DNA of 64,000 nt from Mizuhopecten yessoensis (Eukaryota). The notes beneath the pieces were generated by a model that saw only the letters and a list, made by a program, of their open reading frames with translations, did not search any database and was not told the DNA's origin. The DNA lies in assembly GCF_002113885.1 (NCBI RefSeq), contig NW_018408729.1:233213-297212 (forward strand), in the 5' to 3' direction. The translations under genes and the position numbers were made by a program. Below are positions 2,310 through 18,803 of the stretch, one piece after another (position 1 is the first letter of the stretch; each line of letters opens with the position of its first letter).

Positions 2310-2578
2310 CTGAAAATTAAAAAAATAATCAAGAATACAAAAATACAATTTTTAGTTTGATTTTATACTATCCAGAAAGACTATAGAGAAAGTGAGCACA
2401 GCTCAGAATACTCCTAGCACCCTGCTGGATCTGTAGGTAACTGCTTAAATACTCCTGCTAGGAGTCATGTAGAGAGTCAGAGAGAACCATAGGCCGTACA
2501 GATATGATAAACAGATTTATTTTGTTTATTGATGCATTGTGTGATATATAAACTCAAGTAATCTGATTTTCATGGGCT

Positions 2579-2736
2579 TGTAGTAGGACGAGGAATAGTG
2601 ATAAAGATAGTGCCGTCACTGAGGCTCGAACCTGTGACCCTTGGCTCTCTAGCTCGATGCTCTACCTCTGAGCTAAAAGGGAAATTCCCTACAGCTCACA
2701 CTTGTAAGGCAACCTAAGTAATCCACATCTTTTACA
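2579..2736 (-). mobile_element. Solo LTR (158 bp) containing a tRNA-derived Pol III promoter (Ajax/bivalve TRIM-like)
   Basis: Minus strand reads TGTAAAAG...CTACTACA. Flanks ggct/gtct form a 4-bp TSD with 1 mismatch. Internal A box TAGCTCAGAGGTAGAGC and B box GGTTCGAGCC. Same layout as the LTR at 16554. Confidence 0.7.
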
Positions 2737-2915
2737 GTCTGATTATGTTGTCTTATCTCGAAAGGAAAAAAGAAAGTGAACACTCATCTCATTAGACTCA
2801 AAAATAAAAATGACTTTTGTCACAGACTGACGATGACCAGATATCATAATGATAACTGTGATGATTTATCAAAATTAAGATATTTCATCCCGTCTTGGTC
2901 TGATGACCTACTTAC

Positions 2916-3095
2916 CTTATATGGGTTGTTCCGGCAGTGGTCAGTTGACCTTCCAGCTCTGTGGAGAAGGTTGCGCGGAAGACGTCCTGAGAGAAAGCCT
3001 TTGACCGAAGGACGGTCATCTCCTCTCGCCACCGCCAAACGGTCAACATGAAGTCGGGGTTACCTCCCTGAGAGGCTAGCAGCTCACCGTCAGAG
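2916..3095 (-). CDS. CFAP44: CFAP44 coding exon 7
   Basis: Encodes SDGELLASQGGNPDFMLTVWRWREEMTVLRSKAFSQDVFRATFSTELEGQLTTAGTTHIR; 180 nt, phase 2-2, canonical splice sites. Confidence 0.95.
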
Positions 3096-3304
3096 CTAAA
3101 ATATAAAAGACAAGCTTAGTTCTTAGTTCCAGCTACTATTAGTCCAGACTACTCTCCAGTGATTATGCTATCTGGGTATTTTATAATAACTGAACTAATG
3201 AATTTAAATGTGTGATTTTAACAATTTTCACTTTAAACATTAATTATAACTTATAATGAATTTATAAATCTATGAAATACTGTATACTATTTCCCCCGAC
3301 TGAC

Positions 3305-3444
3305 CTGAAGTCGACGTAGGAGTAGGATTTTTCTGTTCCTCCCCTCAGGATGCGGTGTAACTTGAGGGATGGGTACTCAAATATGTTGATGTTCGGGGAC
3401 TGTCCTTTCTCAGCCACTGCAAAGAACTTCTTGCTCGGGTGGAC
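3305..3444 (-). CDS. CFAP44: CFAP44 coding exon 6
   Basis: Encodes [46 protein letters not shown]; 140 nt, phase 0-2. Confidence 0.95.
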
Positions 3445-13582: not shown

Positions 13583-13838
13583 TGATCCGTGAAAATATCA
13601 TTCATTTAAATATTCGCTTCATGTTAAAGAACAACCTACAACATATATTATTTATTATTGGTATTTTTTTTTTTATAAACATTTTTATTTTTAATAGTAA
13701 TGACAGAAGCTTCCTTTTTTAATTTCGAATGAGTCTGTTTAAATAGTAGCGCTCTCTGGCAGTGTTGATTTGTACGAAGAAATTTCAAATGCAATTTAAT
13801 TGACTCGTAGAGTTGTAAGTTGCAAATGAAGATTATTC

Positions 13839-13872
13839 TACGGAATTAGATTAGATGCTGTCTAAGTCCGTG
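13839..13872 (+). mobile_element. 34-bp TIR-only P-superfamily insert or footprint, copy A
   Basis: TACGGAATTAGATTAGA-TGCTGTCTAAGTCCGTG flanked by 7-bp attattc/attaatc. Confidence 0.7.
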
Positions 13873-13910
13873 ATTAATCTAATGTTTTAAGTCTTATTCC
13901 GTCTTTGCGT

Positions 13911-14068
13911 ATTGCAGAGTTATCTTCTCTTGTGAGCAGGTATTGATTGTTACGTCATTGGTTTGTGTGAGAAAATTACGTCGTTTTCTCAAAAATTGAT
14001 GACGTTACTCTCACAAACCAATGACATAACAATCAATACCTGCTCACAAGAGAAGATAACTCTGCAAT
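13911..14068. mobile_element. Palindromic MITE (~158 bp, long TIRs)
   Basis: attgcagagttatcttctcttgtgagcaggtattgattgtta... pairs with ...taacaatcaatacctgctcacaagagaagataactctgcaat. Confidence 0.8.
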
Positions 14069-14079
14069 CAACGTTGTAG

Positions 14080-14106
14080 CACGGGATTAGATTATCTAAG
14101 TCCGTG
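14080..14106 (+). mobile_element. 27-bp TIR-only P-superfamily insert or footprint, copy B
   Basis: CACGGGATTAGATTATCTAAGTCCGTG with a perfect 7-bp TSD gttgtag. Confidence 0.8.
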
Positions 14107-15425
14107 GTTGTAGTTCCTCATGTACTCTTTTCCAGATGATCGAATAATAATATCCTACTGCAAAGCTTATCCTTTATATCCTTCAAGTCTGCTTCTGCCA
14201 CGTAATGTCCACAATCATCACGTGGATTATAATGACATTTTTGTTTTTGGAGTGCGCATGGTTAAAAATTGGTTAAAAACAGGATAACAAAAAGATGGAA
14301 ATCAGGCCAGTTCGGAGCCACATGTCTGGTCTTTTCGGATACAGGCGTCACTATAGAAACAGTTTTTATTTTCATTGCGGGCCAAATTTGAAGAGGTATA
14401 GAACTAAGCCTGTCGGATTATTATTTTGTATTCAGGCAAATCATACAGGACATTTATTTTCATAAAATAAAATAATGCGATTGAATACATTGTGAATGCC
14501 AATTATATCTTCACAAAAAAATGCCAAAAAACTCCCAATATTAAGCTCAAACAAACCTCAGCCACAGTCACCCGAACTACTCGGTAGTGAAGCTGACGTA
14601 AAACCCCTAAAGAACTCACTGCCGCTCTGACCATTTATTATTCTGATGGCTTACATAGGTTATATGGGTGCGAACTTATTCATTACGTATTATATACGTC
14701 TCTGTTCTGATACACATTGTATTTTTTGGCAGATTCTACCATACTGCTATCGTGTTATATAATACAATTAAGTTAATGAATGTTTATTTAATTAGATATA
14801 TAATATCGGGCTGGGCAGAGACGGATATATTATTATGTAATATATACCTCTCTGGGTTGGGTGATGAACGGAAATGCACAGCTATAAATATCATGTTGCG
14901 CTGTATTTGTGGAGTATATATTCGCGTTATAATATCTAACTTCAAACCCCGCCTGATACAGGTAACATGGAACCAGACCGCTGTTTTGCCCACATATGTC
15001 CGAGTTGGTCTTGTACATTGTCAGTCATTTCTCCCTACACCGAACGATGATAGAAAACTCGGCCCATCCTGCTCATATAACATGTAGAGTTTTAGCCAGA
15101 GGTCACTCAGGACCAACTGACCGACAACCTACTGGTCACTCTGGTGCCATCAATCTCCCTACTGTGTACTACAATGCCTCGTTAGGATCTTGATTAAAAT
15201 CGTGGCCCCGGGAGGGTCATACCTGTCCGGTGTTATCAACGCCGCACCTGTAACGAGATAGGGATCAGGTAACGCGGTGTCCATCAGGAGACGCAATGTG
15301 TTACAGGTAGATATTTGGATACTCTATTGAGACCTTCCTACGGTAGATATTTAATTGTGTATGTAGATGAAAGAATAATCTATTTACTTCCAATAAACAA
15401 AAAAAATACGTTGTTTAAGTTGGAC

Positions 15426-15458
15426 CACTGAATTAGATTAGGACTATCTAAGTCCGTG
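15426..15458 (+). mobile_element. 33-bp TIR-only P-superfamily insert or footprint, copy C
   Basis: CACTGAATTAGATTAGGACTATCTAAGTCCGTG with a perfect 7-bp TSD gttggac. Confidence 0.8.
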
Positions 15459-16553
15459 GTTGGACACCATACACGTTAAAAAGTGATGAACGTTTTAGCA
15501 ATTTTAAAACAAATGGGCATAAATACGTTGAAAATTCCTGCAGTCTCAGTTTAGTATGGGACATGATTTAGTGATGGAATTTGAATACTTTTGCATATGG
15601 GTTAACCAGACACAAAGGGAGGAAATCCATACAACTTGATTTCGATAAAAGAAGCTGGCGGAATGTTAGGCTTCAGTGACCTGGCGTGTTTTCATACTGT
15701 CTGACATTATTTAGCATGTGATATAAACATGTGATATAGATTACTTTTAAACTGTCATGTTTTTTAAGACTGATTCACACCCTGTTTCAACAGTAATTAC
15801 ATACTTGTTGTTGAGAATTACCCAATGGTTCTGCTGCAGTTTATATAATATTTATCTAAAGCTTGTCACAAAGTTCACGGTTGATAAATACCCCCGCACG
15901 ATACTTATATTGCTGGTTTCCGACAACATCCCCAAAATTACGTTAAAGATGGTCAGTATAGTTTCTCAGCATATAGCATATTATCTTTAAATAAAATAGT
16001 TCAGTTCAAGCTCTGGACAATAATTATATAATCGCTAATGCATGTATAGTAGTCCCAATTAATCTTTGACCCTGAAGGGCCGTATGATGAACGACCTCAG
16101 ACAGGTATTAATCCCCGGTGTGACGTAAACCACCATAAAAGGAAGTGATAGTCGTGTGGATTAACAACTTTCTGGCGGCACCTTTTCATGTATATATTTC
16201 GGTGAGATGTGACAAGCAAAAGAACATTACAGTAAAGCACCCGGTAGTACAATCGTATATTGCCCGCAACGATCTTTTTTTATTGCAAAGGACAGTTTTG
16301 TATTTAGAGAGCTTTTTGACTGTAGATTGATTTAGTTTGGGTGTTATAGTGTTTAACGTCCTATTAACGGGTAACTGTTCATTTAAGGACGCAACTACAT
16401 GTGTGTATACATAGGTATGTATGCTGGAGGGCAGGAAATGTTGGTGTATTTGCCTCCATGTCATGATGTGATCATGTGCATATTTGATGCCTCGACGTCT
16501 ACAGGTTTCTGGGTTTCAATACACAACTACTGTCATAAAAAAAGTTATTTTAG

Positions 16554-16848
16554 TGTCAACCTAGTAAAATGCTAGCCGCTTCCCACCGTCTCGGCTAGGG
16601 AGAATTATTTCTCTTTAGCTCATTCGGTACAGTACAGGCAGTGTAAGACTAGAAAGCCAGAGGTCCGAGGTTCGACTCCTGGCGGAGGCATTAAAAATAA
16701 TTACCTCTGTTACATTGGCGCCCAATCAGGGACCCGGGAGATTTGACAAAAATACTCAGCGATACTTGCAAAGGAATCGCTATGACCCCTGGAAAACTCG
16801 GGACGAGTTCTTTCTTTGAGGGGGAGGGGGGTATGTCACCGTGGTATA
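16554..16848 (+). mobile_element. Non-autonomous mini LTR retrotransposon (TRIM) with a tRNA-derived LTR; right LTR truncated
   Basis: LTR TGTCAAC...GTTACA (16554-16714) with A box TAGCTCATTCGGT and B box GGTTCGACTCC; PBS TGGCGCCCAATCAGGGAC (16716-16733, tRNA-Lys-like); 119-bp internal region; PPT GAGGGGGAGGGGGG (16818-16831); TGTCAC at 16834. Confidence 0.8.
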
Positions 16849-18164
16849 TATCTGTTTGGAGCATTCAATGTAATATATTGTACTACATACACTTACTTAC
16901 CTATGAGTGTGATTCTTACAACTACTATCATAAAAAAAAGTTATTTAAGGTCATGACATACTTAAAAAAATCAAGGTGTTCAAATGCTATTCTCGATTGT
17001 GGTATTGCAGAAACTCCGAGTATAGAAAACGTTCGAAGGCTCGTCATCGTATTCAAAGGGGAATAACTCTGTAATGTTTACAATTATCTCCAAACCATTA
17101 TTCTCAAATTAACAAAGATACAAAGTAACCAGTTTAGGATGTAATACAATGATAAAAATACCATGCACCATGACTTGAAATTCGGCTTATAAGAATATTT
17201 TCTACAAATCCTAAACGCACTGACTAGGTGTAATGATAGAGCTAGTGCACGGAATTAGATTAAATATATTGAAGTTTATTAGAAGGACTATAGAAGTACA
17301 TGGTTAGAGTTAACTCCAGTCCGTCAGTAACCCCCACACACAGTTTGAAGCCATCGTAAGTTATCAGATATTTAAAAAAATCTGGTGATTGATAATTGAT
17401 AATTGTAAAAAATATCACATCGCATCACACAGAAGTGGTACACAGTCGTTTGTGTTATGACATGTAATAAAGAAATTTAAAGTGATTAGCAAAGATTTTT
17501 TTTTTAAAATTCCACATCTTGGAAAAAAACACGTTCAACTACGTCACTATAAAGGAACTTTTCATTACAGCCATCAATACATTGAAACTAAGAATGACTT
17601 GATATTACTTCGATTTAGTTCCTTGTTCAGTCTTTGCTGCACTTAACAATTTGACAACGTACAAGGGCCGACATGTAAGTTACAATACAAACAGAATGCA
17701 GTATCAAACTGTACAAAAAAATGTCTCGTCGTTTGAAGCTACATCATCGCAGCTAGTACAATACATGATACAAGAAATTGTCGCTTGTGGCATTCAACGA
17801 AGCTAGTACACTCCTCAGTCCAAACGACACTTTTCTCTCCTTTTAAACGGAGGTTCAGTTCATGAAAAAAATGTCAGTAATTAGATGACAACAGCTATTC
17901 AAGTTTTGTTATATAATCTTCTTTTTTTTAAAATAAAGAATTTGTACCTACTCCCGATATGATAAGACTTAATTTTTACTTACCTCCAAACGAAACACTT
18001 AATTAATGTTCCCAGCATATTGCACTTTTTTTTTCAAAAACGCAATCGGCCAGTTATCATTTCCAAAATATATACTTTTAGTCTGTCGCAACTCTTAATT
18101 ATAGAGTGACTATCGTCATATTGATATTTTATCATTGTATATTTATGTAAACGGAAGGTGAGAC

Positions 18165-18191
18165 CACAGACTTAGATAACCTAATTCCGTG
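18165..18191 (-). mobile_element. 27-bp TIR-only P-superfamily insert or footprint, copy D
   Basis: Minus strand CACGGAATTAGGTTATCTAAGTCTGTG with a perfect 7-bp TSD gtgagac. Confidence 0.8.
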
Positions 18192-18803
18192 GTGAGACTC
18201 AATTAAATTATCTGTATCTAAGATTACTTCATTTTTTGTTTTGCTAGCAATTATCGACATTCAGAACCGAGACAGCACAGGTAATAAATCCATAATATAC
18301 TTTTGCTTTGTTACATAATGAACTATATATGTGTAAAGTCTCATTTGCATTTTGATTATTGTGAAGTGATCATGTTAAAAATTAGTCAGAATGAATTAAC
18401 TGACTCTCTCCTTTTACCTTTTGTTTGGATACGACGACCCATAAAAAACGACAACAAAGAGATAGTCTGTTATTTTCGGAGCAGTACAATTGTGGCAGAA
18501 ACATTACGCAATAATATTTCAGTGTAAACTGATGCTTAAGTGACTATCGATCTAATTAGTAAAGTTGACAGTCATCTGCTGTGTTACTCATTACAGCTTC
18601 CTGGGCTGTACCTTCCGGAGGCCATCAAGGGGTATTTATTGTAATTATTGGCTAAAATCATCTCTCTATTAAATAAAAATTTTATTTTTTTATTTTTGCC
18701 ACAATTCCAAAACAACCGCTAACATACTGGTAATTTCTCAAAACGTTATTAAAACTAAAGACACACAGTTTGTTAGAATTGCCATTGTAATCAAATCACA
18801 CCT

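Follow-up and report, generated by a model that had tools for sequence, protein, structure and literature searches.

Palindromic micro-inserts in a scallop genome are probable excision footprints of a P-like DNA transposon family

Within a 64,000-nucleotide stretch of the genome of the scallop Mizuhopecten yessoensis (contig NW_018408729.1, positions 233,213 to 297,212; the whole of this stretch is referred to as the window), four short inserts were found that each consist of a left-type transposon end (A at position 7) joined to a right-type end (C at position 7), and each is flanked by a different duplicated 7-bp word. We conclude that the four inserts are probably germline excision footprints (referred to as scars) of a single cut-and-paste DNA transposon family, which most likely belongs to the P superfamily. 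That the inserts are footprints appears very probable, and that the family is of the P type appears likely. The evidence lies in the anatomy of the inserts, in their 7-bp duplications, in the ends of the parent element recovered elsewhere in the genome, and in the sharp edge at 17 nt that the scars display when measured against those ends. An earlier examination of this DNA from its letters only (referred to as the sequence-only reading) had already interpreted the inserts as excision footprints, and this interpretation gained support from a length ceiling, from heterogeneous joins and from the presence of longer parent elements.

All four inserts proposed by the sequence-only reading were verified by reading window positions 13700-18400 and by a motif scan, in which the 13-nt end motif (with up to two mismatches allowed) matched 13 times in the window, against a mean of 2.2 and a maximum of 6 in shuffled sequence. 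The claim that each insert has its own 7-bp target-site duplication (TSD) likewise stood, with three perfect duplications and a single mismatch at scar 1 (Table 1). Measured against the ends of the parent element, scar 1 consists of exactly 17 + 17 nt, as had been claimed, joined bluntly. Scar 3, for which 16 + 17 nt had been proposed, instead holds 16 nt of the left end, 2 nt of filler and 15 nt of the right end, and the TA microhomology proposed for the two 27-mers turned out to be TTA: scar 2 retains 15 + 15 nt in a join sharing these three letters, and scar 4, which our script scored as 15 + 16 nt sharing 4 nt, equals scar 2 in length and TTA join, plus point changes. Each window scar carries one or two point changes across its 26 terminal positions; scar 1, for example, begins with TACGG, and scar 4 contains CACAG.

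The solo left end that had also been noticed is real, and could represent the left half of a 53-bp scar that has decayed and contains filler. At the far end of this span, only 11 of 15 positions agree with the right-end consensus, and the flanks (GCTAGTG and GTTAGAG) agree at 5 of 7, both being weak matches. Just upstream of the solo end, an indel polymorphism was noted at window position 17242, where seven extra bases (TAGGTTA or TAGGTGA) occur in all four sequencing runs that we consulted, and a 6-bp indel is located at window position 17206.

Table 1. Scars and solo left end in the window (window positions).
Feature	Span	Insert or end	Strand	Length	TSD
Scar 1	13832..13879	13839-13872	+	34 bp	ATTATTC/ATTAATC, 1 mismatch
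Scar 2	14073..14113	14080-14106	+	27 bp	GTTGTAG, perfect
Scar 3	15419..15465	15426-15458	+	33 bp	GTTGGAC, perfect
Scar 4	18158..18198	18165-18191	- (inverted)	27 bp	GTGAGAC, perfect
Solo left end	17248..17300	17248-17262	+	15 nt of left end	

The abundance and length of such inserts were examined throughout the assembly (988 Mb in 82,659 contigs), using a pattern of two exact 13-nt ends separated by 0-30 nt (26-56 bp in total). This pattern revealed 1052 exact-end copies, and the reversed control pattern none. Because only 4 of the 13 scars that had not been chosen for exact ends (nine encountered incidentally in fetched loci and the four in the window) are in fact exact, the genome-wide total can be put at approximately 2,400-3,400 scars. 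The first 50 sites comprised 13 different lengths between 26 and 40 bp, with a mode at 27 bp: 26 bp (2 sites), 27 (19), 29 (5), 30 (4), 31 (3), 32 (4), 33 (1), 34 (1), 35 (5), 36 (3), 37 (1), 38 (2) and 40 (1). None measured 41-56 bp, although the pattern permitted it, and the predicted length ceiling was thereby borne out by 50 of 50 sampled copies. Widening the gap to 31-60 nt (57-86 bp in total) yielded only 37 further matches genome-wide, most of which were side-by-side scars sharing a TSD copy, nested scars, or satellites built from scars, with three or four holding real internal sequence. In the fetched loci and the window together, the 7-bp TSD was perfect in 33 of 54 scars and had a single mismatch in another 14.

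Scars also tend to lie close to one another. The first 50 exact sites contained seven pairs within 10 kb, against an expectation of about one, nine additional scars turned up in approximately 180 kb of DNA around scars, and the four scars of the window lie within 4.4 kb. At one locus (L042), three copies of GTCGAAC separate two different scars in a scar-TSD-scar arrangement, and at another (L044) a 27-mer is nested within a 27-mer, the inner one having its own TSD. We infer from this clustering, and from both of these loci, that insertion and excision occurred repeatedly in the same neighbourhood, which is consistent with the local reinsertion of P elements. Small satellites, whose repeat units combine scars of this family with a few bases of flanking sequence, were observed at G000:C4496:388444-389587 and G000:C4918:143349-143825.

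Alignment of 46 distinct insertion sites yielded the symmetrised target logo TnnGTnnnACnnA. Within the TSD, positions 1-2 are G in 52% and T in 76% of sites and positions 6-7 are A in 76% and C in 52%, and the flanking position -3/+3 is T/A in 67%. Both element ends begin with CACGG and are as such CANRG-type termini, which by Repbase convention characterise the P superfamily, and the length of the duplications and the palindromic GT..AC target are further features expected of P elements, the former assessed in 54 scars and the latter in 46 sites.

The parent element was recovered by following each end inwards. The left 17 letters followed by T were found at 394 sites. Of the first 100 listed, about 95 were scars and the remainder shared no internal sequence, an outcome that at first suggested an extinct parent. 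That suggestion was ruled out by a 160-bp mini copy (C2286), which revealed that the left end continues with G at position 18: the search had returned only scars because the parent does not have T at that position. When the left 17 letters were instead followed by any base other than T, a common left internal sequence was found in about 20 of the first 100 matches.

The right end gave two shared continuations (Type A and Type B). Type B represents the true terminus, with shared internal sequence and different flanks in every copy. Type A (36 copies) was rejected as the parent, being a half scar fossilised in another repeat that was amplified later: 18 nt of the right end lie between GAGATAC and GATTTAC in a host repeat of about 170 copies, with G000:C15:996033-996108 as an example among approximately 100 sites listed. 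One copy of this repeat (G000:C4099:1984913) lacks the half scar. The arrangement provides a relative date, in which the scar came first and the amplification second.

The parent left end accordingly reads CACGGAATTAGATTAGA followed by GGG, and the right end CACGGACTTAGATA(A/G)CA followed by GGG. Together they form an imperfect terminal inverted repeat (TIR) of 29 bp, alike at 24 of 29 positions, with GGG at positions 18-20 of both ends, shared sequence on their internal side and unrelated sequence on their flanks. Allowing up to three mismatches, 82 left and 63 right parent ends are present genome-wide. They include 23 left-right pairs that share a contig, are correctly oriented and lie 1.4-8.9 kb apart, where about 0.02 pairs would be expected by chance, and the longer elements with the same ends that the sequence-only reading had predicted thus exist. 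These paired elements cluster near 3.4-3.9, 4.3-4.7 and 5.0-5.7 kb, and minis of 66, 77 and approximately 160 bp retain pieces of the internal sequence.

With the parent ends in hand, the number of nucleotides retained from each end was measured in 53 scars. The left side retained 13 nt in 3 scars, 14 nt in 3, 15 nt in 13, 16 nt in 4, 17 nt in 28, 18 nt in none and 19 nt in 2, with a peak at 17 nt that is partly inflated, 30 loci having come from the left-17+T pattern. The right side, which was unselected, retained 13 nt in 8 scars, 14 nt in 5, 15 nt in 14, 16 nt in 7, 17 nt in 17, 18 nt in none and 19 and 22 nt in one each. On either side, retention thus has its peak at exactly 17 nt; not one of the 53 scars keeps 18 nt, and the edge at 17 nt is still displayed by the right side and by the unselected loci. 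A few scars retain 19-23 nt, which lies beyond a strict 17-nt cut. These longer retentions match the parent's own next letters (GGG and onward, covering letters 18-23 in some scars); they could therefore not derive from a mini-element copying itself, and they fit slight templated repair synthesis. Taken together, the retention edge and the left-17+T sites point to a donor cut staggered by 17 nt, as expected of a P-type element.

The way in which the two ends meet varies as well, as had been predicted. Of the joins in the 53 scars, 10 are blunt, 17 share 1 nt, 8 share 3 nt and one shares 4 nt, and the remaining 17 contain 1-7 nt of filler. When the two 17-nt tails are compared, TTA is the sole match of 3 nt, and the commonest form, the 27-mer, is the join at these letters.

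These observations can be accommodated in a single sequence of events, for which we infer a P-type transposase as the enzyme, its cut position as the cause of the edge, and end joining as the repair pathway. The element would insert at a target resembling TnnGTnnnACnnA, thereby duplicating 7 bp. Upon excision, the transposase would cut one strand at the boundary between element and duplication and its partner strand 17 nt within each end, so that each donor flank would keep a copy of the duplication and a 17-nt single-stranded tail of the end. Fill-in and blunt joining of these tails would yield 17 + 17 = 34 bp (scar 1), or 35-41 bp where filler is added, annealing at the TTA common to the tails would yield the frequent 27-mer (scars 2 and 4), and nibbling of the tails could account for the remaining lengths.

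P-type transposase genes are present in this genome, with 25 matches to the P-specific RNase H domain and approximately 40 loci found with a full-length P-type protein query. One lineage of these genes has only four loci (C2226, C660, C4672 and C5202), two of which adjoin ends of the parent family. The C2226 gene carries two P-specific domains (RNase H N-terminal and GTP-binding insertion) and lies on the same strand as a perfect left end 3.5 kb upstream. In its sister copy C660, a right end is located downstream of the gene in matching orientation, and a convergent companion gene has its first exon (C660:211845-212105) 1.4 kb inside that end. As a separate observation, the C2226 transposase gene is interrupted by a repeat of at least 363 bp (L027:2228-2590; G000:C2226:13909-14271) that has more than 35 copies of 92-99% identity.

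A similar layout was read in a P element of the mussel Mytilus coruscus (L078:2668-17309; 14.6 kb, one copy read), which has a 21-nt TIR starting with CATGG/CAAGG and a perfect 7-bp TSD (ATGATAC). Its transposase (P0010) is 49% identical to the C2226 gene of the scallop, and a second gene, starting 0.8 kb inside the right end, converges on it. The mussel end aligns to the scallop right end with a score that was equalled by 6 of 2000 shuffles. On five scallop contigs, homologues of the mussel companion gene and P genes are furthermore arranged tail to tail, which suggests a two-gene P-element lineage in bivalves, and on the strength of these gene arrangements and of the end similarity the autonomous partner of the scar family is likely to be such a two-gene P element. 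The five contigs concerned are G000:C5526:65071-72007, C5342, C1987, C5551 and C5561; the companion gene encodes approximately 400 amino acids with a weak match to C2H2 zinc fingers, and its pairing with the transposase is kept in both mussel and scallop. No clear TIR or TSD was found around the homologues of Ylistrum balloti and Pecten maximus (L076 and L077), and a comparison of copies gave no clear boundaries for the other P families, tandem repeats and gaps interfering.

Several observations count against reading the inserts as footprints of a P element, in addition to the partly inflated left peak and the few longer retentions mentioned above. No P-like coding sequence was found in the 23 paired long elements, and none of them contains the C2226/C660 gene DNA, the 122 bp upstream of it, or sequence encoding a related transposase protein. 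These elements are non-autonomous, as no P-type locus falls inside them. We read no single element that has both ends and a transposase gene; the two gene copies adjacent to an end (C2226 and C660) are both degenerate and have one end each, and the sequence just upstream of the gene is common to these two copies only. Moreover, the 27-mer accounts for 38% of the sampled copies, so that some copying of that form is possible, and no empty or full alleles were seen in the contigs of four sequencing runs. The prediction that a P transposase would lie between the ends has consequently fared unevenly: the 23 pairs encode none and no end-to-end coding element was read, and in its favour stand the two degenerate copies that each adjoin one correctly oriented end, the two-gene layout in common with the mussel P element and the similarity of the ends.

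The lack of P transposase in the 23 two-ended elements is also an argument for an alternative in which the scars are footprints of another or undescribed superfamily that cuts far inside its ends, and the P genes are neighbours by chance or through a shared insertion preference. Ends do land near P genes, as shown by a third P gene (C76738), which lies 2.8 kb from a right end whose incompatible orientation means that it cannot belong to the gene. In a separate search, the 25 P-transposase loci with their 1.5-kb flanks contained no end of the parent family, and rescanning the P-transposase loci with looser mismatches produced nothing beyond a candidate end of a different family (at L018, described below). 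However, we know of no other eukaryotic superfamily that leaves some 17 nt of either end behind. hAT, Transib and MULE elements form hairpins on the flanks, Tc1/mariner elements leave 2-3 nt, and piggyBac elements excise precisely. The two correctly oriented adjacencies of end and gene are independent and occur in a lineage of merely four loci, and the companion-gene layout and the end similarity agree with the verified mussel P element. The 7-bp TSD, the CACGG termini and the GT..AC target also suit the P superfamily (PMC4168063), and we regard an origin outside this superfamily as unlikely.

A second alternative holds that the inserts of 26-40 bp are themselves mobile, as ultra-small two-end MITEs (miniature transposable elements with inverted repeats) whose transposase would need only about 13 terminal nt. 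One exact 27-mer sequence does occur at 19 of the 50 sampled sites, every copy has its own 7-bp TSD, and scars are nested in and adjoin one another, all of which could be expected of mobile units. However, this exact form is also what the only 3-nt microhomology of two 17-nt tails would produce, and the 13 lengths among 50 copies vary centrally only, as a left prefix, filler and a right suffix. The sharp 17-nt edge is moreover defined against a parent whose sequence the mini-elements do not contain, and some scars hold the parent letters 18-23. The common length and internal sequence that MITEs inherit from a master were not observed, central indels and filler being found instead, and the uniform high-copy subfamilies with shared diagnostic mutations named beforehand as the mark of true MITEs were not seen. 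The Drosophila P element, for its part, needs well over 100 bp at each end for mobility. Mobility of the inserts is accordingly very unlikely, and we consider it equally improbable that the 27-bp form (two 15-nt ends sharing TTA) has, besides arising as a footprint, also been re-mobilised by the transposase; had it been, it would be the smallest known transposable unit and would account for the nested scars and the scar-TSD-scar tandems. Chance palindromes or assembly artefacts, for which only the shortness of each insert speaks, can be practically dismissed, given that the reversed control gave 0 matches against 1052, that no window shuffle attained 13, and that scars are present in contigs of independent runs from three studies.

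The footprints in the window were also followed in sequencing reads, which were assessed as contigs only. Four runs, drawn from three studies, yielded contigs that carry scars 1, 3 and 4: scar 1 is spanned in X8 and X13, scar 3 is spanned intact in X1, X2 and X8, and in all four runs contigs end in or overlap scar 4. Scar 2 adjoins a very high-copy MITE and is bridged by no contig. The 1.5-kb joints that seemed to connect scars 1 and 3 were rejected as cross-mapping of other scars. The sequence-only reading had predicted empty or full alleles, and no such allele was seen in the contigs of the four runs; the scars should therefore be fixed or at high frequency, but contigs drop rare variants.

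The MITE next to scar 2 occupies window positions 13895-14071, between scars 1 and 2. It is palindromic, with 64-nt arms that are 95% complementary, and its summed contig depth reaches tens of thousands times the single-copy level. Its right arm is apparently truncated a few bases short of the left duplication of scar 2, and scar 2 abuts it. A tRNA-related repeat at window positions 16472-16933 has a contig depth of approximately 150-200 times the single-copy level.

Scars of other families were encountered as well. A 39-bp scar of a second end family, beginning with CAGAGACG, is located at window positions 14816-14854 between GGCTGGG and GGTTGGG. The fetched loci also hold scars of this CAGAGACG family and of a third family beginning with CAGGGAC, some of which are nested within scars of the present family (L041; C5243:280093). 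At L018:527 (G000:C3819:561354), approximately 100 bp past the 3' end of a deleted C5526-type P-transposase copy, lies an inward-reading end of the CAGAGACG family. This end may tie the CAGAGACG scar family to the C5526-type gene, an assembly gap separating end and gene.

The mechanism proposed here is already known, and what the scallop genome adds are thousands of scars recording a 17-nt staggered cut that is most likely of the P-element type. To our knowledge, the Drosophila P transposase is the only enzyme for which this cut has been mapped, and the same edge is now seen in a mollusc family with 7-bp TSDs, across thousands of natural repair products. This suggests that the odd 17-nt cut is ancestral to the P superfamily, which includes THAP9. 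The scars constitute a natural record of end joining in the germline, in which blunt joins and filler occur alongside a dominant join at a 3-nt microhomology. As they exceed the approximately 80 surviving ends by about 30:1, copy counts badly underestimate past cut-and-paste activity. Scars also ride inside other repeats that were amplified later and seed small satellites, and for annotation purposes such palindromes of 26-40 bp are easily mistaken for MITEs or hairpin motifs. We found no description of natural genome-wide P-type scars in molluscs in the literature searched, which was covered in part.

In Drosophila, P footprints retain at most about 17 nt from each repeat, and the scallop scars resemble them in keeping both TSD copies, with no more than approximately 17 nt of each repeat between them and microhomology or filler at the join. 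They differ in their TSD of 7 instead of 8 bp, in their unrelated end sequences and in their mollusc host. For the Drosophila P element, it is established that the transposase has the peculiarity of cutting with a 17-nt stagger (PMC7776569), that the break is repaired by end joining or homologous repair, and that the element reinserts locally (PMC7776569; PMC10983969). In contrast to laboratory series of P excisions, the scallop record is natural, old and largely fixed, and its cut is deduced from the scars.

Galileo/1360, a Drosophila member of the P superfamily, likewise has a 7-bp TSD and a palindromic target, with consensus GTANTAC (PMC4168063) as compared to GTnnnAC in the scallop, and many of its long copies also lack a transposase. 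Unlike Galileo, the scallop family has a TIR of approximately 29 bp and no long foldback TIRs, and its target is flanked by T at -3, whereas that of Galileo reads AANGT. In the papers searched, we found no report of Galileo scars. The scallop family further resembles BuT5, a MITE that a divergent P element mobilises, in that non-coding elements far outnumber the autonomous P partner (PMC3698922). It is unlike BuT5 in that its non-autonomous elements measure 1.4-8.9 kb, with minis of 66-160 bp, and in that its partner is a putative one. A further comparison is offered by the mussel L078 element, a P element of a different species and a different family from that of the scallop scars, whose ends (CA.GGA.TT...ATA...GGATTGG) resemble the scallop right end and whose two-gene layout is alike.

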